Of a stretch of 64,000 bases of DNA, positions 14,987 through 29,739 are shown in pieces. The notes beneath the pieces were generated by a model. That model saw only the letters and a program-made list of their open reading frames with translations, searched no databases and was not told the DNA's origin. The stretch comes from Pseudomonas aeruginosa PAO1 (GTDB lineage: Bacteria > Pseudomonadota > Gammaproteobacteria > Pseudomonadales > Pseudomonadaceae). Every line of letters starts with the position of its first letter. The first letter of the stretch is position 1. Both the position numbers and the translations under genes were made by a program. The DNA lies in the NCBI RefSeq assembly GCF_000006765.1, contig NC_002516.2. One strand, written 5' to 3'.

Positions 14987-16531
<1,545 letters not shown>

Positions 16532-16769: not shown

Positions 16770-18485
16770 TCAGCGAGGGGCCATGTGGACGATCATCAGT
16801 TGCACGCTTTCCTGGCCGCGGAATTCGTTGACGTCGAGCTTGTAGGCCAGCTCGGCCCAGCGCACGGTAGGGTTGGGCCACTGCTCGCGGTCGATGTTGA
16901 AGGCAATGCCATCCAGTTGCAGCGAGCCGCATTCGCTTTTCAGCACCAGCTTCAGGTGACGCTCGCCGACGATCCGCTGCTGCACCAGCTGGAACACCCC
17001 GTGGAACATCGGCTCGGGAAAGTGCTGGCCCCAGGGACCGGCCTGGCGCAACGCGCGCGCCAGCTCCAGGTGGAACTCCTGGATGCTCAACTGGCCATCG
17101 GAGAGCAGGCGCCCGGCCAGGTCCTCCTCGGCCAGTTGGCGGCGTACTTCGGCATCGAAGGCGGCGGAGAAAGCGCCGAAGTTTTCCTGCGGCAACGATA
17201 GTCCGGCAGCCATCGCGTGGCCGCCGAACTTGCTGATCAGCCCGGGATGACGGGCGGCTACCGCGTCCAGCGCGTCGCGGATGTGGAAGCCGGGAATCGA
17301 CCGTGCCGAGCCTTTCAGGCTGCCGTCGCCGGCATCGGCGAAGGCGATGGTCGGCCGGTGGTAGCGCTCCTTCAGGCGCGAGGCGAGGATTCCGATCACG
17401 CCCTGGTGCCAGTCGGCGTCGAACAGGCACAAGCCGAACGGCAGTTGCTCCAGGCTCAGCTCCTTGAGCTGCGCCAGCGCCTCGCGCTGCATACCCTGCT
17501 CGATGGCCTTGCGGTCCTGGTTCAACTGGTCGAGCTGCACCGCCATGTCGCGGGCCAGCGCTTCGTCGTCGCAGAGCAGGCATTCGATGCCGAGGGACAT
17601 GTCGTCGAGCCGACCCGCCGCGTTCAGGCGCGGACCGAGGATGAAACCCAGGTCGGTGGAGGTGATCCGTACCGGAGGCCGCCCGGCCACCTCCAGCAGC
17701 GCGCGCAAGCCCGGCCGGGCGCGGCCGGCGCGGATGCGCGCGAGGCCCTGGTGGACCAGGATGCGGTTGTTGGCATCGAGCGGCACCACATCGGCGACGC
17801 TGCCCAGCGCCACCAGGTCGAGCAGCTCGGCGAGGTTCGGTTCCTTCAGCCCGCGCCGGGCGAACCAGTCCAGCTCGCGCAGGCGCGCCCGCAACGCCAG
17901 CATCACATAGAAGATCACCCCGACCCCGGCCATGGCCTTGCTGGGGAATTCGCAGCCCGGCTGGTTGGGGTTGATGATCGCATCCGCCGCCGGCAGTTCC
18001 GGGCCAGGCAGGTGGTGGTCGGTGACCAGCACCTTGAGCCCCGCGGCTTTCGCCGCCTGGACGCCGTCCACGCTGGAGATGCCGTTGTCCACCGTCACCA
18101 GCAGGTCGGGACGCTTCTCCAGGGCCACGCCGACGATCTCCGGGGTCAGGCCGTAGCCGTACTCGAAGCGGTTCGGCACCAGGTAATCGACCCAGGCCGC
18201 GCCGAGCATGCGCAGGGCCAGCACGCCGACGCTGCTGGCGGTGGCGCCGTCGGCGTCGAAGTCGCCGACGATGAGAATCCGCTGGCCGCCCTCCAGGGCG
18301 TCCACCAGCAGCGCCACGCCCTCCTCGATGCCTTTCAGCCGCTGGTAGGGAATCAGCCGCGCCAGGCCCTTGTCCAGCTCCTCGGCGCAACGCACGCCAC
18401 GAGCCGCGTACAGGCGCGCCAGCAATGGCGGAAGGTCGCCGAGATCGGGCAGGGTTTCGGGCAGGGGGCGGGGTTCGATACGCAT
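16770..18485 (-). CDS. recJ: ssDNA-specific exonuclease RecJ
   Basis: GDFDADG, TVDNG, TDHH (DHH) and GGHAMAAG motifs. Confidence 0.97.
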   Translation of the reverse strand: MRIEPRPLPETLPDLGDLPPLLARLYAARGVRCAEELDKGLARLIPYQRLKGIEEGVALLVDALEGGQRILIVGDFDADGATASSVGVLALRMLGAAWVDYLVPNRFEYGYGLTPEIVGVALEKRPDLLVTVDNGISSVDGVQAAKAAGLKVLVTDHHLPGPELPAADAIINPNQPGCEFPSKAMAGVGVIFYVMLALRARLRELDWFARRGLKEPNLAELLDLVALGSVADVVPLDANNRILVHQGLARIRAGRARPGLRALLEVAGRPPVRITSTDLGFILGPRLNAAGRLDDMSLGIECLLCDDEALARDMAVQLDQLNQDRKAIEQGMQREALAQLKELSLEQLPFGLCLFDADWHQGVIGILASRLKERYHRPTIAFADAGDGSLKGSARSIPGFHIRDALDAVAARHPGLISKFGGHAMAAGLSLPQENFGAFSAAFDAEVRRQLAEEDLAGRLLSDGQLSIQEFHLELARALRQAGPWGQHFPEPMFHGVFQLVQQRIVGERHLKLVLKSECGSLQLDGIAFNIDREQWPNPTVRWAELAYKLDVNEFRGQESVQLMIVHMAPR

Positions 18486-18528: not shown

Positions 18529-19068
18529 TCAACGCTCGCCCTGCAGCCACTCCAGCTGCAACTCGTGCTGGCCGTTCTCGTCGGTGACGAACAGGGTGCC
18601 CTCGCTGATCATCACGGTCCAGTTGATCGAACGCGGCAGGTCGCGGGACAGGCTCTCCAGGGGTTCCTGGGGCACTGCCGCGACGTTGATGTTCTTCAGG
18701 CTGCGCACGCTGTCCAGCACCTTGGTCTGCCAGACCCGCAGGTTGCCATAGGCGAGCAGGCTGAAGCGCTCGCAGCGACGCGAGCACCAGGTGATGCGCT
18801 CGGCGTCCGGCTGGCCGACTTCGATCCAGTGCAGGACCCGGCCGTCCAGGCTCTTTTCCCAGAGCGCCGGTTCGTCCACGTCCGACAGGCCACGCCCGAA
18901 GGCGATCTGCTCGCCGTACCACAGCACGTAGGCCAGCAAGCGCACGGCCAGGCGCTCCTCGGTCTCGGAGGGGTGCCGGGCCACGGTCAGGCGCAACGTC
19001 TCGTAGACCCCGCGGTCCAGGTCGGTGAGGGAAATATCGGCTTTATAGGGCGTGGATTGCAGGGCCAT
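18529..19068 (-). CDS. yaeQ: YaeQ family protein
   Basis: MALQSTPYKADISLTDLDR..ARHPSETEER..DEPALW..HWIEVGQPD. Confidence 0.9.
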   Translation of the reverse strand: MALQSTPYKADISLTDLDRGVYETLRLTVARHPSETEERLAVRLLAYVLWYGEQIAFGRGLSDVDEPALWEKSLDGRVLHWIEVGQPDAERITWCSRRCERFSLLAYGNLRVWQTKVLDSVRSLKNINVAAVPQEPLESLSRDLPRSINWTVMISEGTLFVTDENGQHELQLEWLQGER

Positions 19069-19174
19069 GGGAATACCGGCGTGGGAAGCGAAAGGGCGCA
19101 AGTCTAACCTGAAACCCGCCCGCGTGCGGTCCGCCGGCCGACCGCCTGCCCTGCCTTTCTCGCGTCGCTGCCGC

Positions 19175-19867
19175 TCAGCGCGGGGCGTAGCGGCCCCAGA
19201 GTTCCTCGAACTCGCGCCGATAGGCGCCGATCAGCACGGCGTCGTCGGTTACCAGCAGGTTCTCTTCGTTGTTGACGCTGGCGCTGCGGGTCCAGTTGAA
19301 ACTGCCGTTGAGCAGCCAGGCGCCATCCACCAGGGCGAACTTGTGGTGCATGTGGAAGGGACTGTCGTCGATTCGCAGCGGTACGCCGGCCTCGCGCAGC
19401 GCATGGATGTCGCTGCCTTCGTCGAACTGCTTGTCATCGTCGCTGATGATCCGCACCGGAACGCCGCGCCGATGGCAGGCCAGGATTTCCGCACTGAGCT
19501 GGTCGTCGGAGATGGTGAACACGCAGATGTCCAGGCTCTGCCTGGCCTGCCGGCACAGTTCGCGGATCTTCCGCCGACACTCCTCGCCGGGACTGAAATA
19601 GGCGCTGGCGCGGCTGCGCGGCGGCGCCGCGGTAACCTCCAGGGTGCGCACCACCTGCTCCAGCCACTTCAGGGCGGCTATCCGTTCGCCCTGCTCCTCC
19701 AGGAGGACCAGCTCACGCACCAGGTCGAAGGCACGGTTGCGCAGGAAACGCACCTGGTCGGGTGCCAGCTCGCTGCCCAGTTGGCGCAGTTCGTCCCGCT
19801 CCTCGTTGCTCAGCTTCAGATCGGCCAGGCTGTCGCGCAGCTGGCGGTCCAATCCGTCGAAGTCCAT
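19175..19867 (-). CDS. Single-HKD phospholipase D / Nuc-Zucchini-like protein with N-terminal helical domain (about PA3727)
   Basis: H174-x-K176-x4-D181 followed by GSFNWT; SD GAGGAG; starts 18 nt after the ATPase stop. Confidence 0.88.
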   Translation of the reverse strand: MDFDGLDRQLRDSLADLKLSNEERDELRQLGSELAPDQVRFLRNRAFDLVRELVLLEEQGERIAALKWLEQVVRTLEVTAAPPRSRASAYFSPGEECRRKIRELCRQARQSLDICVFTISDDQLSAEILACHRRGVPVRIISDDDKQFDEGSDIHALREAGVPLRIDDSPFHMHHKFALVDGAWLLNGSFNWTRSASVNNEENLLVTDDAVLIGAYRREFEELWGRYAPR

Positions 19868-19885
19868 TTCCCGCTCCTCGTGTCC

Positions 19886-22800
19886 TCAGGGTTGATCGTT
19901 CTCCAGCGGCCTCTGCTCGCCGCCCAGCAACCGGCCCAGTTCGTCGAGGCGGCTGGATATCTCGTTGATGCGGTTGTGCGTGCGCAGGTCGACGTCGATC
20001 TTGCGGTCCATCACCTTGATCAGCGGCAGGAAACTGTCCTGCAGGCAGGCGGCAAGGCTCTCCAGCACCTGCTGCACGCCCGGCTGCGCAGGCGCCGTCA
20101 CCTCGACGTTCAGCGCCGGCGCACCCTGGCCGAGCTGGCGCAATCCAGCCAACAACTCGTCCCAGGGCGCCGGTTGTACCGGCTGGGGTTCGCGAGCCAG
20201 GCCACGGACGCTTTCCACAAGGTCGTTGAGCTGCGCAACCAGCCGTCCGCCGACGTCGGCGTCGCTGCCGCCCATGGACTTGTTGCGCAGGAAGTCACGC
20301 TTGATCTGCGCCCAGCGCTCGGCCTGCTCGGGGCTCTGGTTGCCGCGCAGTTCGGCGAGCTTCAGCAGGTTCTCCTCGGCTCCGGTGGTCAGCAGTTGCG
20401 ACTCGCCCTGGTAGTGGTCGGCGATCAGTTGCAGCAGCTCGGCATCGTTCATCACCGCGGAGATCTTCTCCGCCATCTTGTTCATGTTGCGGTAGCTGCC
20501 CTGCAGCTTGAACGGCGGCTCGCTGCGGTACTGGTCGGCCTGGGCGGCGCTGGCGATGTACTGCTGGTTGACCTTGAGCACCACGTCGCGCACCTGCATG
20601 AGGCGTTGCAGGGTGCTGCTGATCTCGTTGATCTCGGCACCGCTGTAGCCGTGGGCCAGCTCGTTGCTGGAGAACGGCTTGCCCTCGGCCTTGGCGACGA
20701 AGCGATAGACGTCGGCCATGTCGCGGGTGGCCAGCGGCGCGAGAACCGGGTTGGAGGTCAGGGCGTTCTCGATGTAGCTGAGGGAGAACGCCTCCTGCAT
20801 GCCGCTGAGGGTGTCGCCGAGGTTGTAGATGTCGGCGCGGTTGGCGAGCATGTCGGGAATGCGGAAGACCTCGCCGGACTCGGTGTAGGGGTTGCCCGCC
20901 ATCACCACGCAGAACTTCCGCCCACGCATGTCGTAGGTCTTGGTCCGGCCCTTCCACACCCCTTCCACCCGGCGCGTGCCGTCGCAGAGGGAGATGAACT
21001 TCTGCAGGAACTCCGGATGGGTGTGCTGGATGTCGTCGACATAGAGCATCACGTTGTTGCCCATCTCCAGCGCCAGGTTGAGCTTCTCCAGTTCCTGCCG
21101 CGAAGTCGCGTCCGGCGCCTGCCCGGGGTCGAGCGAGCGCACCTCGTGGCCGAGGGCAGGACCGTTGATCTTCATGAAGATCAGCCCCAGGCGGTGCGCC
21201 ACGTACTCCATCAGGGTGGTCTTGCCGTAGCCTGGCGGGGAGATCAGCATCAGCAGGCCCATCAGGTCGGTGCGCTTGTTCTCGCCCACCGTCCCCATCT
21301 GCTTGGCCAGGTTGTCGCCGATGACACCCAGGTAGACGTCATTGATCAGCTTGTTGCGAACGAACGAGGACAGCGGTCGCGGCTTGAACTCGGCCAGGCG
21401 CAATGCCTCGCGCTCGTGTTCGACGATCTCCTGGCGCAGCGCCTGGTAGCGCCGCAGCCCCGGCAGGAATTGCTGGCGATGGCGACGCAGGCGGCCGAAG
21501 AAGTCGTCCACCGCCAGCGCCAGGCCGCGTTCGAAGATGCGCGGATGCTCGCCCATCAGGCCGTCGACCTGGAAGCGCAGGTCGACCTCGGTGATCCGTC
21601 GTGGCATCTCCTCGTCCAGCAACGAGAGCGCCACCGCCTCGTCCAGGTAGGCCGCCAGCGGCTGGAACTCGGCGTCGCCACATAGTCCGCGCAGCCAGTT
21701 GCCGGCCAATTCCCACTGGGCGGCGGGCCGCTCGCCGAGACGCTCCAGGGTCTGCCGGTAGTCGTCCCATAGACGCGCGCCTTGCAGGCGCAGCTTGAGT
21801 CCTTCCTGCAATTGCCGGGCATATTTGCTGAAGGTGAATTCGGGACGCTCGGCGGACAATTCCCAGACCAGGTACTCGGCCGCCTCGTCGATATGCTGCG
21901 GGTCCAGCGCGATGGGCTGTTCGGCGAGCAGCGCACGCATCGCCGCGGCCACTTCGCCGCGAAGGGCGAGCAGGCCGTCGTCACGACCGAACATCTGCTG
22001 GATGCTGCGGCTGCTGCGTGCCCGCTCGGGCCAGCCGGCGACTTCCCGCTCCTCGCGCCGGCGGCTCCAGAACAGGCTGGCGAAGGCCCGCGCCGAGGGT
22101 GCGTAGCGTAGCAGTCCGGCGCTCTCGCGCAACGGCAGCAGGCGAACCAGGATCGCCGCCGCATCGTGGTCGTGAATGCCTTTCTCGTAGCCCTCCTTGT
22201 AGCGCGGTGCGGCGAAATCGCGGATCGCCCGCGCCAGCTCGTCCGGCTGCGCCAGCAGCGCCTGCAAGCGCTCCAGGCTGAAGCCATCGCGGCCCGCGTC
22301 GGCGGCGGCGAGCACTTCGCCGGCGAGATATTCGGCGCGGTACAGCGTCTCCGATTCGGATTCCAGGTTCACCTGCCAGAACTCGCGCAACTCATCGAGC
22401 CGCGGGTCCTGCAGCGGTTCGAGGAAATCGGTGCCGGTCAGGTGCAGGTACAGCGCGTCGCCGCGCGGCATCAGGGTCAGGTCGAGTTCCTGGGTGTTGA
22501 CGCTGAAGCGGTGGCGCGGGCCCAGGCGGATGACGTCGCCGCCCTCCTCGAACAGCTCGCTCTTGTCGCGCAATGCGCGGACCGCCTGGTCGCGCGCGGC
22601 CTTCAGGCGCGCCTCGACGTCGTCGGCCTTGACGCTGTCCTTCAATTCGCGAAGACGTTCGGCCAGTTCGCGCAACTTGAGGATCAGCGGGTCGGCGGCG
22701 AAGAACGCGTTCAGTTCCTCCGCCTGGGTGAAGCGCGCGGTGCGTCGTTGCAGGCTGTCGAGAATTCGCCGGGCGGCGTCGAGCAGTCCCTGGGCCTTGC

Positions 22801-25126
22801 GCTGGCGCTCGTCGAGCAGGGTCTGCTTGTGCGCTTCGAAGGTTTCCAGCAGCTCCTCGCGCTTGGCCAGGATGTCGCCGAGGAACTGCTCATGGTCGCC
22901 GAACTGGCTTTCCAGTTCCTCCAGTTGCACCAGCAGGCGCGACAGTTGCTCGTCGCAGCGCTCGGGGTCCTGGGCCTGGGCCAGGGCGTTGGTGATGCCC
23001 TGGCCAAACAGTTTGAACTGGGCGCCGAACTGGGCCACGGTCTCGCTCGAACCGAGTCCCTTGCGCCGCTGCTCGGCGCGCGCCTTGGCCTGGTTCAGGC
23101 GGGCGTAGATCTCCGAGATCGACTCGATGATGCGGGTCCGCTGGGTCGCGTCGTCGATGCGCAGCGAAGCCATCAGCGAGGACAGCATGTCGAGGTCGCC
23201 GGCCATCGCCTCCAGGGCCGCCAGCGGCTCGCCGAGCTGGGCCACGGTCTCGGCTTTCTGCGCCTCGCCATCGAGGCTCTGCAGGCGCTCCAGCAAGGGC
23301 TGCAGGGCCTGTTCGCTGGCGAGGAAGGTCGCGGTGGCGGCGGCCACCCGCTCGTGGGCCGCGAGCAGTTCGGCCTCCATGGCGTCGAGTCGCGCCACGT
23401 CGATGTAGCGGTACTCGCGGATGGTCAGCAGCGACCCACGCTGGGCGGTGATGCCATTGAGCCCGTCGACGAACTGCTGCACCCGGTCCCAGCCGTCGGG
23501 CAGCAAGCCGGAGAGCAGCGCCTTGTGCCGCTCCTCCGCGTCGATCATCGCCTGGGCCGACTGGCGGCGGATACTTTCGACCTTCTCGTACTCGTCGAGC
23601 ACCAGCTCGGCGGTCGCCGCCACTTCGCGCAACAGCGGCGCCAAGCCGTCCAGTTGGTCGCTGCCGAGCCAGTGGTAGACGTCGAACAGGCGCTGGGTGT
23701 TCTGGCACAGCAGCGAGTAGCGCTGGATCGAAACCGCCGGGGTCTCGATCTCCCGGCACAAGTCGTAGAGGTCGGAGACGCCGCGCACCAGCTCGGCATT
23801 GCCGATCCGCCCGAGAAAACCGCTACGCGCCGGTTGGCGGGCCGCGTACTCCTCGGTGCAGAACGGCGTCTGCCAGACCTGCATCGGATGGATGCGGGTC
23901 GGTTCCTCGCCTTCGGCGGCGAAGATCACCATGCGCCCGTCCTCCAGGCGCGCGTAGCCGTGGCCGAACAGCGGATTCTGCAACTGGCGGTTGATCAGGT
24001 TGTAGGTGAGCAGCACGTTCCGCCCCTGCTCGGGATGGTAGAAAACGTACTGCACGTCCTCGCCGTTGGGCGAGCGTACCGAGCGCTTGAAGCGCATGCC
24101 TTCCATGGATTGCTCGAAGGTGCGGTACTCGCCGTTCTGCAGGTAGTAGCCGCCGGGGAAGATGATCCCGTGGTCCTCCGGCAACTGGATGCAGGCCAGG
24201 CCGATGGCGTCGATGCGCTCGACCTTGCCGGTCAGGCTGTTGAACACCAGGTAGCGCCACTGCTCCTCGCGATAGGGCAGGACCTTGAGCAGCAGCAGGC
24301 TGCCGAGGCGGGCGAACTCAACCTGCGCGTCGTCCAGCGACTGGGTCTTGTCCATCACCTCTTCGCGATAGATGCCCAGGCCGACCTCGGTGTTGTTCTC
24401 GACCTTGATGGTCAGGTCGCCGCCAATGGTCTCGACGAACAGGGTGTCGAGGATGTTCAGGTGCGGGAAGCGGCCCTCCACCACCATCTCGCGGGTAGCC
24501 CGCTGCCATTCGAAGTCGAACGGTGCCGGCAAGGCGATGTCGCGCTCGCCGCGGTTGTCGATGTAGCGGACTTCGCTGCCGTCGCTGGAGATCGACCAGC
24601 GGAACACGCGGATGTCGGTGATCCGCTCGCCGATCTGGAAGCTGGCCAGCAGCTTGCCGTCGCGGATCGCCAGTTGCAGCAGGCGGGTGTTCTTGTAGTA
24701 GGTGTAAAGCTCGTTGAAGTCGTTGACGAAGCCCGGCGCGGCGAGAAAGCTGTCCCCCAGTGGCACAGGCTCCGCCTCGTAGCCTTCGCTGCCCTCCACC
24801 AGGCGGTAGAGGGAGAACACGTCGGCCACGCCGGTTTCCTTGCGCAGGCCGATGAACACGTTGTAGCCGAACAGCAGGCAATCGCCGACCTGGACGATAT
24901 CGCGGGCGATGCAGTTGTTCTCGGTACGGATGCGGACCCGGCCGATCACATCCATCTGGCTGTCGCCGAACTCCTCCAGGCGACTGGCGTTGAGCCTTTC
25001 GGCGGTCTGCCGCAGGCGCTGGCCCTGCTCCAGCAGGCGCTTGTGCAGCACCTCGTAGGCGCCGCCCTCGGCAACGGCCTTGTCCAATACGTCCTGCGCG
25101 GGAGTTGCGGCTTGAGTGTCCGACAT
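19886..25126 (-). CDS. 1746-aa AAA+ ATPase with long N-terminal beta-rich and coiled-coil regions (about PA3728)
   Basis: Walker A SPPGYGKT (1296-1303), Walker B MLYVDD (D1364-D1365), sensor-like GNP, candidate Arg finger ANR (R1430). Confidence 0.9.
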   Translation of the reverse strand: MSDTQAATPAQDVLDKAVAEGGAYEVLHKRLLEQGQRLRQTAERLNASRLEEFGDSQMDVIGRVRIRTENNCIARDIVQVGDCLLFGYNVFIGLRKETGVADVFSLYRLVEGSEGYEAEPVPLGDSFLAAPGFVNDFNELYTYYKNTRLLQLAIRDGKLLASFQIGERITDIRVFRWSISSDGSEVRYIDNRGERDIALPAPFDFEWQRATREMVVEGRFPHLNILDTLFVETIGGDLTIKVENNTEVGLGIYREEVMDKTQSLDDAQVEFARLGSLLLLKVLPYREEQWRYLVFNSLTGKVERIDAIGLACIQLPEDHGIIFPGGYYLQNGEYRTFEQSMEGMRFKRSVRSPNGEDVQYVFYHPEQGRNVLLTYNLINRQLQNPLFGHGYARLEDGRMVIFAAEGEEPTRIHPMQVWQTPFCTEEYAARQPARSGFLGRIGNAELVRGVSDLYDLCREIETPAVSIQRYSLLCQNTQRLFDVYHWLGSDQLDGLAPLLREVAATAELVLDEYEKVESIRRQSAQAMIDAEERHKALLSGLLPDGWDRVQQFVDGLNGITAQRGSLLTIREYRYIDVARLDAMEAELLAAHERVAAATATFLASEQALQPLLERLQSLDGEAQKAETVAQLGEPLAALEAMAGDLDMLSSLMASLRIDDATQRTRIIESISEIYARLNQAKARAEQRRKGLGSSETVAQFGAQFKLFGQGITNALAQAQDPERCDEQLSRLLVQLEELESQFGDHEQFLGDILAKREELLETFEAHKQTLLDERQRKAQGLLDAARRILDSLQRRTARFTQAEELNAFFAADPLILKLRELAERLRELKDSVKADDVEARLKAARDQAVRALRDKSELFEEGGDVIRLGPRHRFSVNTQELDLTLMPRGDALYLHLTGTDFLEPLQDPRLDELREFWQVNLESESETLYRAEYLAGEVLAAADAGRDGFSLERLQALLAQPDELARAIRDFAAPRYKEGYEKGIHDHDAAAILVRLLPLRESAGLLRYAPSARAFASLFWSRRREEREVAGWPERARSSRSIQQMFGRDDGLLALRGEVAAAMRALLAEQPIALDPQHIDEAAEYLVWELSAERPEFTFSKYARQLQEGLKLRLQGARLWDDYRQTLERLGERPAAQWELAGNWLRGLCGDAEFQPLAAYLDEAVALSLLDEEMPRRITEVDLRFQVDGLMGEHPRIFERGLALAVDDFFGRLRRHRQQFLPGLRRYQALRQEIVEHEREALRLAEFKPRPLSSFVRNKLINDVYLGVIGDNLAKQMGTVGENKRTDLMGLLMLISPPGYGKTTLMEYVAHRLGLIFMKINGPALGHEVRSLDPGQAPDATSRQELEKLNLALEMGNNVMLYVDDIQHTHPEFLQKFISLCDGTRRVEGVWKGRTKTYDMRGRKFCVVMAGNPYTESGEVFRIPDMLANRADIYNLGDTLSGMQEAFSLSYIENALTSNPVLAPLATRDMADVYRFVAKAEGKPFSSNELAHGYSGAEINEISSTLQRLMQVRDVVLKVNQQYIASAAQADQYRSEPPFKLQGSYRNMNKMAEKISAVMNDAELLQLIADHYQGESQLLTTGAEENLLKLAELRGNQSPEQAERWAQIKRDFLRNKSMGGSDADVGGRLVAQLNDLVESVRGLAREPQPVQPAPWDELLAGLRQLGQGAPALNVEVTAPAQPGVQQVLESLAACLQDSFLPLIKVMDRKIDVDLRTHNRINEISSRLDELGRLLGGEQRPLENDQP

Positions 25127-25275
25127 CCTGGTCTTCCTGGGTCTACGGCGGTCATCGATGGAAACCGGCCCGAGCGGCCTGCCCCGGGCGCAGCCAACAG
25201 GCCACGCCAGGGGCTGCGCCGCTCAGGGCGCGGGCGGAACGCCTCCGCAGTTGGCGGAGGAGGCTGCGGGTCGAC

Positions 25276-27342
25276 TCAGACTTCCGCCGCCGGCTCGTTC
25301 TCGTGGCCGCTCTTGCGTTCCGGCATCACCGCAGCGGCTGCGCCACGGCCGTTGAGCAGGCGGGCGAGGACGTCCTGCACCACCGGGCTCTTGCCGACCA
25401 CACCTTCGATGGCCTTGCCCACCGACAGCGACTTGGCGAAGGAGTTGAAGAAGTCGCCCTCGCCGCCGACGATCTCGATGTTCGCCTTGCCCAGCGCGGT
25501 GGCGAGCACCTCGGCCTGGTCCTTGGCGATGTCCTTGTTCGCGGCGATGGCCGCCATGGCCTCCTCGAAGCTCTTCTCCAGCTGCATGCGGAACTCTTCG
25601 TGCTGGCGAGCGCTGTCGCTGAGGGCATCCAGGGCGCCGAACTTCTTGCCAAGCCCCTCGGCCTCGGCATTCAGGCGCTGCAGCAGTACTTCCGCTTCCG
25701 CGCTGCCCTGGTCCTTGGTGGCCTTGGCCTTGGCCGCGCCGAGCTGCTCCTCGCCGCGCGCCTGGGCGCCGAGCTTCTCGGCCAGCACCTTGGCTTCGGC
25801 CAGGCCGTCCTTCTCCTTGGCCGCGGCCTGCGCCTCGAGCACCCGGGCGTCGGCCAGGCCGCGCTCTTCGTCGCCCCTGGCTTCGGCGATCAGTTGTTCG
25901 GCACGTACCCGCGCCGCTGCCAAGCCATCCTTTTCCTTCGCCGCGGCGGTGACTTCCAGCACCCGCGCATCGGCCAGGCCCGGCGCTGCGCGCTCGGCCT
26001 CGATGCCCTCGGCCAGACGCTTCTTCGCCTCGGCCTGCTTCGACGCCGCCTCCAGCTCGGCCTGCGCCATGGTGTTGATTTCCACCGCCTTGTGCTTGGA
26101 GCGGGCCTCGTCGGCTTCCGCCTGCTTGACCTGGCGTACCAGCTCCTGCTCGGCTTCCGCCTGGGCCTGCAGCAGTATCACCTGCTTGACCCGCTCGGCC
26201 TCGGAAACCTCGCGCACCTCCTTGATCCGCTCCTCCTCTTGGGCCACGGTCTTTTCCACCGCGACGCGCTCGCGAATCACATTGGCAATGTTCTTGCGCT
26301 GCTCTTCCAGCGCCTTTTCCTTCTCGATCTTCTGCAGCTCCACCTCACGCTCGCGGGCGACGATCTCCAGGTCCTTGGCGCGGGTGACCTTCTCCACCTC
26401 GATGACCACCGCGCGCTGGCGGTTCTGCTGCGCCACCTCGACCTCGCGCTGGTGGTTCTCGGTGCGCACGTCGATTTCCTGCTGCGCCTGGATCCGCGCC
26501 TGCTCGGCCTTCAGCCGCTCCTCTTCCTTGACCCGCGCGGTTTCCGCTTCCTCGCGGGCACGGATGGTCTCGATCTCGCGCTTCTGCCGGGCCTCGGCGT
26601 CAGCCTGCTGGCGCTCCAGGGCCAGGGCCGCCTCGCGGGTCTCGACGTTCTTCTTCTTGATCGCCAGCTCTTCGTTGCGCTCCAGTTCGTTGGTGATGAC
26701 GTTCTGGGTGGCGGTCAGCTCGGTGATCTTGCGGATGCCCTCGGCATCAAGGATGTTGCTCGGGTCCAGCGAGTTCTTCGCGGTCTGCTCCAGGTAGTCG
26801 ATGGCGACGTCTTCCAGGACGTAGCCGTTCAGGTCGTTGCCGATCACCTCGATGATGCGGTCACGGAAGTCCTGGCGATTCTCGAACAGCTGGACGAAGT
26901 CGAACTGCTTGCCGACGGTCTTCAGCGCCTCGGAGAACTTGGCATTGAACAGCTCGTTCACCGCCGAACGGTCGGAAGCACGGTCGACGCCGATGGCCTT
27001 GGCCACCTTGAGCACGTCGTCCTGGGTCTCGTTGACCCGCAGGTAGAAGGCAACGGTGATGTCCGCGCGCATGTTGTCGCGGCAGATCAGGCCGTCCTTG
27101 CCGCGCCGGTCGACCTCCAGGGTGATCAGCGAGATGCGCATGAACTCCTTCAGGTGGATCACCGGATAGACCAGCGCACCGGTGAAATGCACCTTGGGCG
27201 TCGACGACATGTCGTTGACGATCAGCGCGGTGCCTTGCGGGACCTTGATGTAGAAGGCCTTGAACAGGGCCAGCAGGCCCACGACCAGCAGAACGACCAG
27301 GCCCACTCCCAGCAGGAGGGGCATCAGCGACGTCATATCCAT
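25276..27342 (-). CDS. Flotillin / SPFH (YqiK-like) protein (about PA3729)
   Basis: N-terminal TM helix, SPFH segment (LICRDNMRADITVAFY), very long Ala/Glu coiled coil, C-terminal IEIVGG. Confidence 0.88.
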   Translation of the reverse strand: MDMTSLMPLLLGVGLVVLLVVGLLALFKAFYIKVPQGTALIVNDMSSTPKVHFTGALVYPVIHLKEFMRISLITLEVDRRGKDGLICRDNMRADITVAFYLRVNETQDDVLKVAKAIGVDRASDRSAVNELFNAKFSEALKTVGKQFDFVQLFENRQDFRDRIIEVIGNDLNGYVLEDVAIDYLEQTAKNSLDPSNILDAEGIRKITELTATQNVITNELERNEELAIKKKNVETREAALALERQQADAEARQKREIETIRAREEAETARVKEEERLKAEQARIQAQQEIDVRTENHQREVEVAQQNRQRAVVIEVEKVTRAKDLEIVAREREVELQKIEKEKALEEQRKNIANVIRERVAVEKTVAQEEERIKEVREVSEAERVKQVILLQAQAEAEQELVRQVKQAEADEARSKHKAVEINTMAQAELEAASKQAEAKKRLAEGIEAERAAPGLADARVLEVTAAAKEKDGLAAARVRAEQLIAEARGDEERGLADARVLEAQAAAKEKDGLAEAKVLAEKLGAQARGEEQLGAAKAKATKDQGSAEAEVLLQRLNAEAEGLGKKFGALDALSDSARQHEEFRMQLEKSFEEAMAAIAANKDIAKDQAEVLATALGKANIEIVGGEGDFFNSFAKSLSVGKAIEGVVGKSPVVQDVLARLLNGRGAAAAVMPERKSGHENEPAAEV
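25741..25980 (-). repeat. Tandem 120-bp (40-codon) internal duplication in the flotillin
   Basis: GLADARVLEVTAAAKEKDGLAA.. versus GLADARVLEAQAAAKEKDGLAE..; DNA copies end at 25980 and 25860. Confidence 0.85.
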
Positions 27343-27377
27343 AGCAGCAGTTCTCCTTGATTCTCACCGAGCCCGGG

Positions 27378-28019
27378 TCAGATACCGCGGAACTCTTCCT
27401 CGGTAACGACCCGATAGGCGTGCTCCGCCTCCAGGTACTCCAGCAGCACGACGCGATCGCCGCGCTTGAAGCCTTTGTTTTCTTCCGCACGAACTTTCAG
27501 GATCAGCCCGGCGCCGCCGTCTTCCAGCAACGCCTCGCCATGTTGCAGGGTGACCCGCCCGCTGCGCACCACCGCGACCTGGCCCAGCACCGACTTGCTG
27601 CTGGTGCTTTCCAGCTTGCGGAACAGCGGCCGCAACGGCCGGCACAGCGTGGCCGCCAGCGGCGCCGCCAGGAACAGCGCGCCCACCGCCACCACGGCGC
27701 CCAACGGGTAGCGCAGCCAGCCGAGCGGCAATGCGCTGAGCAGCCACAGCTGGACGAAGTAGCAGAGGAACCAGGCGAAGAAGGACAGCAGGGTCAGCAC
27801 CAGGGTGACCGGTACGCCGTTGAGTTTCAGCTTCGCCAGCAGCGCGGCGAGGCCTTCGGCCTGGCCGGCGCCATCGACGACCGACTCGGCGTCGAGATCG
27901 AGCACATCGATCTCGACCATGCCCAGGGCGACGATGCCCCAGTAGATGATCGCTAGGATCAGAAGAAAGCTGAACAGCACGGTCGGGAACGACAGCGCCG
28001 TCTGCAGGAAACCTTCCAT
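27378..28019 (-). CDS. YqiJ / NfeD-like membrane partner of flotillin (about PA3730)
   Basis: Several TM helices, GVPVTLVLTLL motif, C-terminal OB-like beta segment (GQVAVVRSG..GEALL..KRGDRVVLL). Confidence 0.82.
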   Translation of the reverse strand: MEGFLQTALSFPTVLFSFLLILAIIYWGIVALGMVEIDVLDLDAESVVDGAGQAEGLAALLAKLKLNGVPVTLVLTLLSFFAWFLCYFVQLWLLSALPLGWLRYPLGAVVAVGALFLAAPLAATLCRPLRPLFRKLESTSSKSVLGQVAVVRSGRVTLQHGEALLEDGGAGLILKVRAEENKGFKRGDRVVLLEYLEAEHAYRVVTEEEFRGI

Positions 28020-28074
28020 TGTCGCTCTATCCCTGAAAAACGGGCCCGGACGCCTTCGCCGGGCCGCGGGCCTA

Positions 28075-28770
28075 TCAGGCCTTGCCCTTTTCCTTCAGGC
28101 GCGCCAGCACGCCATCCACGCTGTTGCCCGAGGCCTTGATCCCAGCCGCGCGCAGCTTGGCGTCCAGCGCATCGTCCGGCGCCGCCGCGCTGGCCAGTTC
28201 GGCCGCGGCATCCATGGTCGCCGCGCGTTCGGCCTGGCGCTGCTTGATCCGCTCCAGGGAGTCCACCGCGGTCTGCAGCTTGCTCTTCGAGTTGCCGTAG
28301 CGCTGGGCAACGGCCATCTGCGCCTTCTGCACGCTCTCGGTGGCCTTGACCGTATCCACCTGTTGCTTGAGCTGGCGGATGTTGCCCTCGGCCTGGCTCA
28401 CCGACTTGCGCAACTGGGCTACGCTGGCGGCGAATTCCGCGACCTGGGCACGCTCGCCCTCGAGCTGGTTCTCCAGGGTCGCGATCTTCTCCGCGACCTC
28501 CCGGGCCAGCTCCTCGTTGCCGGCCTCCAGTGCCTTGATCGCGTATTGCTCGTACTCGGCGACCTGGGCCGCGCCCTTCTCGACGCGCTCCTGGGCCAGG
28601 CGGTGGCGGGCCATGATCGAGGCCAGCGCTTCCCGCGACTTGCGCAGTTCGACGTCGGCGTCGCGGATCTCCTGGTCGAGGATGCGCAGCGCCTGGCTGT
28701 CGACGATCGCCTCGCCAACCTCGTTGGCTCCGCCGCGCAGGGCGCTCAGCAGCTTGCTCCATACCGTCAT
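28075..28770 (-). CDS. PspA/IM30 (ESCRT-III superfamily) protein, YjfJ-like (about PA3731)
   Basis: MTVWSKLLSALRGGANEVGEAIVD..LDQEIRD..; coiled coil; ATESVQKAQ; SD GGGAGG. Confidence 0.9.
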   Translation of the reverse strand: MTVWSKLLSALRGGANEVGEAIVDSQALRILDQEIRDADVELRKSREALASIMARHRLAQERVEKGAAQVAEYEQYAIKALEAGNEELAREVAEKIATLENQLEGERAQVAEFAASVAQLRKSVSQAEGNIRQLKQQVDTVKATESVQKAQMAVAQRYGNSKSKLQTAVDSLERIKQRQAERAATMDAAAELASAAAPDDALDAKLRAAGIKASGNSVDGVLARLKEKGKA

Positions 28771-28784
28771 GATGGTGTCCTCCC

Positions 28785-29405
28785 TCAGGCCCGGGCTTTC
28801 AGGTAGCCGGCGTAGACTTCCGTGGCGCGGATCACGTTGCCGGCCAGGGTTTCGATTTCGTGCAGCACGCTGGCCAGCGACGAAGTCGTGCTCAACGCGC
28901 CGAACATGCTGTAGCAGCGCTCCTCGCCCGGCAGGTTGAGCAGGCCGATGCTCGACAGCGGGAACAGTTGCCGGCTGAGCAGGACCTCTTCGTTGAAGGC
29001 GGTCGCGTCGGTAACGTCGCTTTCCGGCCAGAGCAGCGCCTCGACGATGATCTGCTCGCCCTGGGGCGCGACGAACACCGGCAGGTCGCCGTATTCGCGC
29101 ATGATCACGTAGAGACTCGCTTCCGCCCCCTCGATCAGCTCGATCTGGGCCTCGCCGCTGCTGAACAGCTCGGTGCCGCTCAGGGCCTCGGCCAGCGAGC
29201 GAGCGTTCCATACCCGGGCTTCCGTCATGTCTTCCTCCTTCTCCAAATGAGCCGCTCCGGCAGCCGGGCGACGCAGCATCCGCTCGATGCCGGCGAGCGC
29301 CGCGGCGTTCTCCGGCAAGATCCAGACTTCCTTCTTCACCAGGCCCTGCTCGCGCAGGCGCTGGCGAAAGACACGCTGATAATGGGCCGATGATTTCCGT
29401 TGCAT
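28785..29405 (-). CDS. YjfI/DUF2170 protein with N-terminal basic extension (alternative internal start at 29228; about PA3732)
   Basis: GDLPVFV..EQIIVEALLW..PLSSIGL..YSMFGAL core; upstream in-frame MQRKSSAHYQRVFRQRLREQGLVKKEVWILPE. Confidence 0.82.
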   Translation of the reverse strand: MQRKSSAHYQRVFRQRLREQGLVKKEVWILPENAAALAGIERMLRRPAAGAAHLEKEEDMTEARVWNARSLAEALSGTELFSSGEAQIELIEGAEASLYVIMREYGDLPVFVAPQGEQIIVEALLWPESDVTDATAFNEEVLLSRQLFPLSSIGLLNLPGEERCYSMFGALSTTSSLASVLHEIETLAGNVIRATEVYAGYLKARA

Positions 29406-29411
29406 GGACTC

Positions 29412-29440
29412 ACACTACGAGATCACATGTAAGATTTCAA
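29412..29440 (-). promoter_or_regulatory. Predicted sigma70 promoter TTGAAA-17-TAGTGT; predicted +1 at the A of ATG 29405
   Basis: -35 at 29440-29435, -10 at 29417-29412, 6 nt (GAGTCC) to the ATG. Confidence 0.65.
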
Positions 29441-29454
29441 CAGATCACATGTAA
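29420..29454. repeat. Two exact 13-bp direct repeats AGATCACATGTAA, 22-bp period
   Basis: Copies at 29420-29432 and 29442-29454, each containing the palindrome ACATGT; they flank the -35. Confidence 0.9.
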
Positions 29455-29739
29455 TAAAAACCAACGCACGCGCATATCTACGCCGGGCCGGCCGGAGCAT
29501 GGAAAAGAAACACGGGGAGGAAAGAGAGAAAGAAATGGCACGAGGGGCCTCCCTGGCTCGGTGTCTGGCGCGCTACATCCTGTATCGACTCCCGCATTAA
29601 ACCCTCTATGCAAAAGGAATTGAAGGACCGCCGGGCATATCGGGAAAAAACGGGAAACGTCTCACCCTACCGCGGCACCCGCCCGCACCGCCGGCAAATG
29701 CTCTAGGCTATGCGCACACTGCAGCCTGACGGACACCGC

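Follow-up and report, generated by a model that had tools for sequence, protein, structure and literature searches.

The bacABCDEF operon of Pseudomonas aeruginosa: a fixed NfeD-flotillin-ATPase triad with exchangeable partners and a possible role in envelope stress

The bacABCDEF operon (PA3732-PA3727) of the Pseudomonas aeruginosa chromosome consists of six minus-strand open reading frames (ORFs) at 19175-29405 of a stretch of 64,000 nucleotides from strain PAO1. We refer to this whole stretch as the window, and the features of the locus are collected in Table 1. The bac system is already known. An initial annotation of the window, made from the letters alone, described six co-oriented genes and read them as one membrane-remodelling or defence machine, in which flotillin marks damaged membrane, PspA polymerises on it, the ATPase disassembles or powers the polymer and the phospholipase D (PLD) family protein edits lipids or acts as a nuclease. 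The description of the genes was accurate. Their sizes and the gaps between them (14, 55, 35, 149 and 18 nt from bacA to bacF) match the ORFs exactly, and the identities of the components hold by Pfam, NCBIfam and profile-profile comparison. Purine runs resembling Shine-Dalgarno (SD) sequences, said to precede most of the starts, are present ahead of bacB, bacD, bacE and bacF; there is a weak one ahead of bacC and none ahead of bacA. The interpretation fared less well. Comparison with related loci points to BacC, BacD and BacE as the fixed unit, with PspA as one of several partners.

Table 1. Genes and other features of the bac locus, with positions in the window
Feature	Position	Strand	Description
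bacA promoter region	29406..29455	-	palindromes and -35-like/-10-like hexamers
bacA (PA3732)	28785..29405	-	206 aa, DUF2170/YjfI
bacB (PA3731)	28075..28770	-	231 aa, PspA/IM30 of YjfJ type
bacC (PA3730)	27378..28019	-	213 aa, YqiJ/NfeD-like membrane protein
bacD (PA3729)	25276..27342	-	688 aa, flotillin-family (SPFH)
bacD-bacE spacer	25127..25275	-	149 nt, strong predicted RNA structure
bacE (PA3728)	19886..25126	-	1746 aa, giant MoxR-like AAA+ ATPase
bacF (PA3727)	19175..19867	-	230 aa, single-HKD PLD family

A profile of the C-terminal module of BacE recovered at least 583 species genomes, and a search of 50%-identity cluster representatives gave 988 matches. We kept the 80 loci most similar to the query. 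All counts given below for the neighbourhood come from those 64 of them in which BacE is full-length and the sequence upstream measures 4.8 kb or more; the six P. aeruginosa proteins were compared with all ORFs of each locus by iterated search, and PspA was counted as present only when encoded at the bac locus itself. In every one of the 64, bacC and bacD lie directly upstream of bacE on the same strand, and bacC lies directly upstream of the flotillin gene. This recurrence of the C-D-E order in all 64 complete loci from other species goes far beyond what chance would give. The genes bacA and bacB are found at 38 of the 64, always together and in four cases divergently oriented, and bacF at 16 of 63. 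Set against C and D at 64/64, these counts indicate that the fixed unit is the NfeD-like protein, the flotillin and the giant ATPase. The initial annotation had treated all six proteins as parts of a single machine; the survey finds that the constant neighbours of the ATPase are flotillin and NfeD, with PspA only at 38 of the 64 loci.

The core triad is spread over Pseudomonadota, Myxococcota, Actinomycetota, Acidobacteriota and a metagenome-assembled genome of the Clostridia. The most distant loci have the triad only: those of Myxococcota and of the Clostridia genome, where the flanks are complete, and that of Acidobacteriota, which is cut off upstream. Other genes take up the places next to the triad. 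At 13 loci from several orders, ranging from Pseudomonas to an actinomycete (L003-L006, L010, L014, L020, L024, L029, L031, L035-L037), the gene directly after bacE encodes a rhomboid intramembrane protease (PF01694, E 1e-18); P. aeruginosa does not have it. The toxic anion resistance protein TelA (PF05816, E 1e-71) is encoded at most 760 nt downstream of bacE at 14 loci, mostly of Xanthomonadales (L015, L016, L018, L019, L021-L023, L025, L026, L030, L032, L033, L052, L072). Most of these TelA loci are without the PLD and about half of them without PspA. PspA, PLD, rhomboid and TelA are exchangeable additions to a fixed triad.

At three loci genes have been inserted between the flotillin and the ATPase. 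At L004 (5756-6441) these encode a TFIIB-type zinc-ribbon protein, confirmed by Pfam, and a small ORF that looks TerB-like by eye. At L017 (3015-6353) there is a candidate nucleotidyltransferase/HEPN-type pair with a large ORF, and at L065 (4506-6521) there are two copies of a candidate Rpn-like nuclease gene, both likewise judged by eye.

What kind of ATPase is BacE? Pfam places DUF3686 at residues 38-485 (23672-25015) and DUF7902 at residues 606-689 (23060-23311), the latter inside a long helical middle region. The conserved AAA+ module occupies residues ~1160-1645 (20192-21649) and is followed by a variable C-terminal tail. The length of the tail was considered as a tracker of the presence of A-B or F and was rejected, as inspection revealed no correlation. 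Over its C-terminal ~490 residues the module is 47-64% identical across phyla, with many invariant positions, and it scores 25.5 bits with the Pfam AAA_5 model against a cutoff of 22. Its motifs are Walker A K1302, which is the lysine that the initial annotation had named, Walker B D1364/D1365, N1412 and R1430. Searches of the PDB with the BacE sequence and profile matched only Walker A stretches, and the N-terminus with DUF3686 matched nothing there, either as a single sequence or as a profile.

The C-terminal module was modelled with AlphaFold2 from an alignment (pLDDT 81.8); a single-sequence model was useless (pLDDT 40). When the former was compared with the PDB by Foldseek, the target-normalised TM scores were 0.61 for CbbQ, 0.57-0.59 for NorQ, 0.58 for cso-CbbQ and ~0.35 for RuvB. 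Vps4, spastin and katanin were not among the top 50 matches. In the model Walker B and sensor 1 are separated by a beta-hairpin, which is also found in the MoxR-type clade. Pfam detected no MIT domain in BacE (DUF3686, DUF7902 and AAA only) and no VWA domain in any protein of the operon. BacE is a soluble, cytoplasmic protein without a protease domain, and no homology to FtsH or YME1L turned up. The C-terminal motor is, as modelled, a MoxR-type AAA+ and no homologue of Vps4, so the Vps4-like ATPase of the initial annotation is not borne out by a fold nearest to CbbQ/NorQ without a detectable MIT domain; a functional analogy to Vps4 is still conceivable. MoxR ATPases are normally paired with a VWA partner and serve as chaperone-like remodellers of specific partner complexes. 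BacE and its relatives also carry the product name 'DNA repair ATPase', which has no support from domains, fold matches or conserved neighbours and looks like an inherited misnomer.

The two constant companions of BacE are BacC and BacD. BacC is a membrane protein with a C-terminal soluble domain, and BacD combines a membrane anchor at its N-terminus with a long coiled coil. Neither has a Pfam match even at E up to 10, with the Band_7 model included for BacD, and neither matches the PDB as a single sequence or as a profile. Family profiles of both proteins were built from the related loci and compared by hhalign. In this comparison, BacD matched the E. coli flotillin YqiK with 99.9% probability (E 1.4e-31, 401 columns) and BacC matched E. 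coli YqiJ with 91.6% (E 8e-7). There is also a weak NCBIfam FloT match to BacD, which sources label 'flotillin family protein'. BacB is a full-length match to PspA_IM30 (Pfam E 3.5e-66; 223 bits, cutoff 33.9). Aligned from end to end with E. coli YjfJ it shows 37% identity (E 3e-35), and it matches solved Vipp1/PspA structures in the PDB with E 4e-7 to 1e-3. PspB or PspC were not matched by Pfam or NCBIfam in any of the six Bac proteins.

BacF has a PLD domain (PLDc_2, E 6.7e-30) at residues 103-224 (19196-19561), preceded by a helical N-terminal extension of ~90 aa; there is no membrane anchor. It has a single HKD motif made of H174, K176 and D181, followed by G188-S189-x-N191. The best relatives with solved structures are mammalian mitochondrial cardiolipin hydrolases, PLD6/MitoPLD (E 7.6e-32 and 1.3e-29), and the alignment with PLD6 is nearly gap-free over ~136 residues. 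The nucleases Nuc (2.8e-11) and NucT (4.6e-6) come well behind PLD6. There are also weak PADLOC matches to PLDs of defence systems, namely DrmC (3.6e-9), MkoB (6e-8) and DpdK (1e-6). Whether the substrate of PLD6/Zucchini is cardiolipin or nucleic acid has long been debated. The initial annotation was right to assign BacF to a single-HKD family; the integral role that it gave to the PLD does not agree with the presence of bacF at only 16 of 63 related loci.

A good deal is known about the expression of the operon and the phenotypes of its mutants. The name 'biofilm-associated cluster' for PA3732-PA3729 goes back to Macé et al. 2008, and the initial annotation was correct in linking 'bac' with biofilm and virulence. 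In mutants of bacA and bacB, biofilm, swarming, rhamnolipids and virulence are all reduced (PMC2587700; PMC10948618). It had also been supposed that the genes are co-transcribed and co-inherited, and this stands: RT-PCR (reverse transcription followed by PCR) over all five junctions established in 2024 that bacA-F are one operon (Wallart et al. 2024; PMC10948618), infection by two lytic phages raises PA3728-PA3732 together (PMC12041424), and the same five rise jointly in a proteome study (PMC13637947). PA3731 is induced on exposure to the phenol-soluble modulins of S. aureus, which are membrane-active staphylococcal peptides. PA3732 is listed as a direct RsmA target (PMC4066749), and an AlphaFold screen predicted a BacA-BacB interaction with a score of 0.981 (PMC13092808). 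In strain PA14 the equivalents of bacABCDEF are PA14_16140-16200. More than 1000 P. aeruginosa contigs hold all six proteins as exact matches, which makes the cluster near-invariant in this species, and its GC content is uniform with the flanks.

We now turn to BacA. By Pfam it belongs to the DUF2170/YjfI family, and it scores 339 bits against a cutoff of 300 with the NCBIfam equivalog NF050185, 'biofilm formation regulator BacA'. The DUF2170/YjfI domain, which is CesT-like, covers residues 66-202. Ahead of it lie a conserved basic domain (residues 1-47, 29265-29405) and a variable linker. The structure solved by Wallart et al. 2024 (PDB 8q8o) is that of a 146-aa BacA and covers residues 61-206 only. 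Like the structure, the gene models of PAO1 and PA14 begin at Met61 and omit the N-terminal domain. That domain was found in 31 of 38 related BacA genes, and at the protein level residues 1-47 are conserved in Pseudomonas, Lysobacter, Comamonas, Gilliamella, Cellvibrionaceae and other groups, in contrast to the variable linker. Judged by this pattern of sequence conservation, the 60 residues ahead of the crystallised BacA are no annotation artefact. PF11455, 'Antitoxin MazE-like', weakly matches the N-terminal domain in 11 of 18 members, with a best E of 0.001 that is below the cutoff. A profile of the domain had no match in the PDB, and in a profile search of the protein database for stand-alone relatives only BacA fragments were found. 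At seven short-form loci (L044, L061, L063, L064, L067, L070, L073) the YjfI protein is without the N-terminal domain. Each of these seven loci encodes a separate conserved protein of ~110 aa with weak ribbon-helix-helix matches, usually directly after the pspA-like gene.

Inside bacA there is a strong SD sequence, GGAGAAGGAGGAA, ahead of the Met61 ATG (29223-29225), SD and start together lying within 29223-29245. An in-frame ATG with an SD-like motif is found at the same domain boundary in 24 of 31 long-form loci, though the residues of the linker vary. Since the internal SD and ATG are kept in spite of a variable linker, two nested BacA products are likely: the conserved internal SD with Met61 probably also yields the 146-aa BacA, without the putative DNA-binding part. 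The RsmA sites reported 'around the SD' would map to the linker and the Met61 start of BacA.

Upstream of bacA lie two 12-bp near-palindromes with an ACATGT core, a proximal one at 29422-29433 and a distal one at 29444-29455 (-28 and -50). Between them is a -35-like hexamer, TTGAAA (29435-29440), and a -10-like hexamer, TAGTGT (29412-29417), ends 6 nt before the ATG of the long form. The pattern TYACATGTRA occurs just twice in the window, both times upstream of bacA, where 0.01 occurrences are expected. For long-form bacA in other genera, the proximal palindrome is present at a fixed position in 28 of 32 cases and two sites are present in 26. Two palindromes were seen at none of the seven short-form loci, and a site with the ACATGT core upstream of bacC was seen at 2 of 28 loci without A-B. 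The palindromes thus co-occur, by cross-locus counts, with the N-terminal domain of BacA and lie next to the domain's own gene. A TAnnnT sequence ends 6-7 nt before the long-form ATG at 25 of 27 loci, and an SD-like motif precedes that ATG at 1 of 28. From these counts across genera we infer operators and a leaderless promoter at bacA. The proposal rests on cross-genus conservation, with the hexamers compared by eye, and a sigma-70 scanner found no site at its own threshold.

A sigma-54 promoter, which had been proposed in 2008 and again in 2024, was not corroborated: no match to the textbook -24/-12 consensus TGGCAC-N5-TTGCW with up to 3 mismatches is present on the minus strand upstream of bacA. 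Wallart et al. 2024 report that BacB-F are up 6-13 fold in a bacA insertion mutant, which fits autorepression. We incline slightly towards the following reading. A sigma-70-like promoter would give a leaderless bacA mRNA and would be overlapped by operators bound by the N-terminal domain of BacA; the CesT-like domain would bind BacB, whose state could set the level of repression; and Met61 would probably be the start of the 146-aa form. Judging by the comparative results, a truncated form of BacA and a promoter model without support seem to underlie earlier work on this protein, which matters for the interpretation of the published structure and mutant data.

Two other features of the gene layout deserve a comment. 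The spacer between bacD and bacE has a predicted folding energy of -94.5 kcal/mol (z = -2.9), none of 200 shuffled sequences folds equally well, and it has no T-run. No minus-strand terminator-like site was detected within the bac cluster, and Rfam has no match in the cluster, the spacer included. The RNA structure may be a processing or stability element that tunes the ratio of the upstream and downstream products. Housekeeping genes flank the cluster. Those upstream are a CoA-transferase gene and thrC; those downstream are yaeQ, recJ and the gene of an M4 protease. The genes yaeQ (PF07152, E 5e-62; 18529-19101) and recJ (16770-18485) lie downstream of bacF on the same strand, and no terminator-like site was detected in the bacF-yaeQ interval. 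Nevertheless, we rejected PA3726/YaeQ as a seventh member of the operon: it is a neighbour in Pseudomonas only and at a variable distance. Further downstream on the same strand is a gene for a 498-aa M4 zinc metalloprotease (14987-16483), whose size and position fit LasB.

What, then, might the operon do? It may well be a modular envelope-stress operon, in which BacCDE are the core and BacAB and BacF are accessory. SPFH scaffolds are known to organise AAA+ proteases and a rhomboid, as in HflK/C-FtsH and SLP2-PARL-YME1L. BacD would build a flotillin platform together with BacC, and BacE would spend ATP to remodel this platform or its clients. The platform would then bring BacB (PspA) polymers and BacF to repair or reshape the stressed inner membrane. 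BacA could have two tasks, as a chaperone of BacB and as a repressor of the operon, and when BacB is consumed at the membrane the repression could be relieved by partner switching. Precedents for partner switching are PspA-PspF and the ExsC-type systems.

Two parts of this picture are more tentative than the whole. It is plausible, if somewhat doubtful, that the flotillin-NfeD assembly has in BacE a dedicated ATPase, which is no PspA disassemblase; BacE would dock through its N-terminal DUF3686 and the long helical region, and its conserved pore loops would assemble, open or strip flotillin oligomers or their clients. Equally tentative is the suggestion, made by analogy, that the flotillin platform recruits an accessory effector to damaged or specialised patches of the inner membrane, so that in P. 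aeruginosa polymers of BacB might seal or reshape the patch while BacF might act on cardiolipin. An association of this kind has a parallel in B. subtilis, where, as cited in PMC7619361, the SPFH protein YdjI tethers PspA to the membrane. The most far-reaching version of the proposal would make BacE the first dedicated ATPase of a flotillin/SPFH assembly, a MoxR motor on a giant arm that opens, loads or strips flotillin cages. PspA, the PLD6-like lipid hydrolase, rhomboid and TelA would be interchangeable effectors brought to one and the same platform, and full-length BacA would be a bifunctional DNA-binding repressor and CesT-like PspA chaperone, encoded by a leaderless dual-start gene, that links transcription to the assembly state of PspA by partner switching. 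All of this taken together we regard as rather unlikely.

The alternative closest to the initial annotation puts PspA at the centre of an ESCRT-like machine: flotillin marks the damage, PspA polymerises, and BacE is a Vps4 analogue that disassembles or powers the polymer. PspA and an AAA+ ATPase are indeed co-transcribed in the bac operon, and the operon is induced under membrane-perturbing conditions. The idea is not new either. Ravi et al. 2024 suggest ATP-dependent remodelling like that by Snf7/Vps4 for PspA-AAA+ associations, and according to a 2025 review an equivalent of Vps4 appears to be absent in bacteria, so the role is vacant. Nevertheless, we consider the PspA-centred machine unlikely. 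BacE occurs without an adjacent PspA at 26 of 64 loci and never without flotillin and NfeD, its AAA+ fold is of the MoxR type, outside the classic clade and with no MIT domain detected, and PspA rods are generally known to assemble and to remodel membranes without a partner ATPase.

A machine for anti-phage or anti-toxin defence would look different in its effector, as the PLD would be a nuclease triggered by membrane damage that is sensed by flotillin, PspA and the ATPase. The rise of PA3728-PA3732 on infection by two lytic phages would fit, and so would the weak matches of BacF to DrmC, MkoB and DpdK and its resemblance to Nuc and NucT; yet induction by phage is also seen in the classical Psp response, which is not a defence system, and BacF is far closer to PLD6 than to defence PLDs and is missing at 47 of 63 related loci. 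The other five proteins match no PADLOC system model beyond coiled-coil noise. Unlike typical defence islands, the core genes are near-invariant (in more than 1000 P. aeruginosa contigs), have uniform GC content and are flanked by housekeeping genes such as recJ, yaeQ and thrC. We see a very slim chance for defence, which the initial annotation had raised. That the operon is dedicated to regulating biofilm, virulence and the production of rhamnolipids, which its name implies, is also very unlikely. The evidence for that is in the phenotypes of the bacA and bacB mutants (PMC2587700; PMC10948618), and envelope stress acting indirectly would fit these; in the bacA mutant the transposon insertion is uncomplemented, several phyla have the core triad, and all the components are from membrane-maintenance families. 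Finally, BacE would be a DNA-repair ATPase working with the product of the downstream recJ if one were to follow what Pfam says of DUF3686 and the product name given at NCBI. Besides these names there is recJ itself, two genes downstream on the same strand, and RuvB is among the AAA+ matches. To this we give hardly any credence: the RuvB matches span only the generic AAA+ core (TM 0.35 against 0.6 for MoxR proteins), the invariant neighbours of bacE are genes for membrane proteins, and adjacency to recJ was seen only at Pseudomonas loci, with variable insertions between. As annotations, 'biofilm regulator' and 'DNA repair' seem to be indirect or inherited.

A modular operon built on the triad has difficulties of its own. 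The functional link between BacE and BacD is proposed from gene linkage. BacE is a MoxR-type ATPase in an operon that has no VWA partner for it, and the DUF3686 domain and BacC are without solved or Pfam relatives. PspA may be encoded elsewhere in those genomes that have no adjacent one, and BacE could still act on it there. Instead of hydrolysing lipid, BacF could act as a nuclease. As for BacA, binding of DNA by its N-terminus is suggested by Pfam matches below the cutoff and by co-occurrence with the palindromes, two papers propose a sigma-54 site for bacA, and read-out from the transposon could account for the rise of BacB-F in the bacA mutant, whose MAR2xT7 insertion is uncomplemented.

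Whatever its exact function is, the bac operon is a place where two questions meet, namely how bacterial flotillin assemblies are dynamically controlled and whether PspA polymers are regulated by an ATPase. In the light of the comparative results, attention moves away from PspA and towards the triad of flotillin, NfeD and ATPase. Within P. aeruginosa the operon is conserved; phage infection and membrane-active peptides induce it, and biofilm and virulence phenotypes have been linked to it. What is new here are the counts for the triad, the MoxR-type motor, the likeness of BacF to PLD6, the N-terminal domain of BacA and its putative operators, the proposed leaderless start and the internal one, and the genes for rhomboid and TelA as alternates. 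We offer them as leads for specialists.

How does this compare with what is known already? In locus, proteins, gene order and operon structure the system is the published bacABCDEF (Macé et al. 2008; Wallart et al. 2024). The published account has a 146-aa BacA and a sigma-54 proposal, whereas the comparison across genera supports a form of 206 aa, palindromic operators and a leaderless promoter of the sigma-70 kind. That similar contexts appear in PspA comparative genomics, as the initial annotation noted, is also correct. The accessible text of Ravi et al. 2024 (mSystems) describes the same neighbourhood, CesT/Tir-PspA with band-7/flotillin, a novel AAA+ and YqiJ/YuaF (and PLD), which is exactly the same architecture, and reports that abbreviated flotillin-YqiJ-AAA+ operons are more widespread. 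In that text there are no counts, and it does not give the AAA+ clade, the PLD6 likeness, the rhomboid and TelA alternates or the N-terminal domain of BacA.

E. coli has the parts in a dispersed form. Of the products of yjfIJ(KLMC), YjfJ shares 37% identity with BacB and YjfI shares 34% with BacA; YjfI lacks the N-terminal domain of the BacA type. The separation of yjfIJ and yqiJK into different operons, noted in the initial annotation, is confirmed; they are 1.2 Mb apart, and neither pair has a DUF3686 ATPase or a PLD beside it. The canonical Psp system (PspF-PspABC) differs in its control and in its partners: the bac region is without a sigma-54 match (up to 3 mismatches), without an enhancer-binding protein among the flanking genes and without PspB/PspC. 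With the ESCRT-III and Vps4 of archaea and eukaryotes the bac operon has in common that an ESCRT-III-fold polymer and an AAA+ ATPase are encoded together, here in one transcription unit. BacE differs from Vps4 in being of the MoxR type, with a pre-sensor-1 hairpin, in having no MIT domain and in having no obligatory linkage to the ESCRT-III protein.

The best fold matches of BacE are CbbQ and NorQ, which, in CbbQ-CbbO and NorQ-NorD as in RavA-ViaA, are MoxR proteins with VWA partners, and the AAA_5 match agrees with this. Compared with MoxR proteins, BacE is about six times larger, has DUF3686 and a helical region of ~650 residues, has no VWA in its operon and has membrane-scaffold proteins as neighbours. 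BacF has a single HKD motif in common with PLD6/MitoPLD/Zucchini and with Nuc. Unlike PLD6, it is without an N-terminal membrane anchor and has a helical extension of ~90 residues. The bac operon resembles HflK/C-FtsH and SLP2-PARL-YME1L in that an SPFH protein goes with an AAA+ ATPase, here by genetic linkage, and with a rhomboid protease at 13 of the related loci; unlike FtsH and YME1L, BacE is soluble and has no protease domain. BacD and the adjacent upstream BacC have both features of a flotillin (SPFH)-NfeD pair.

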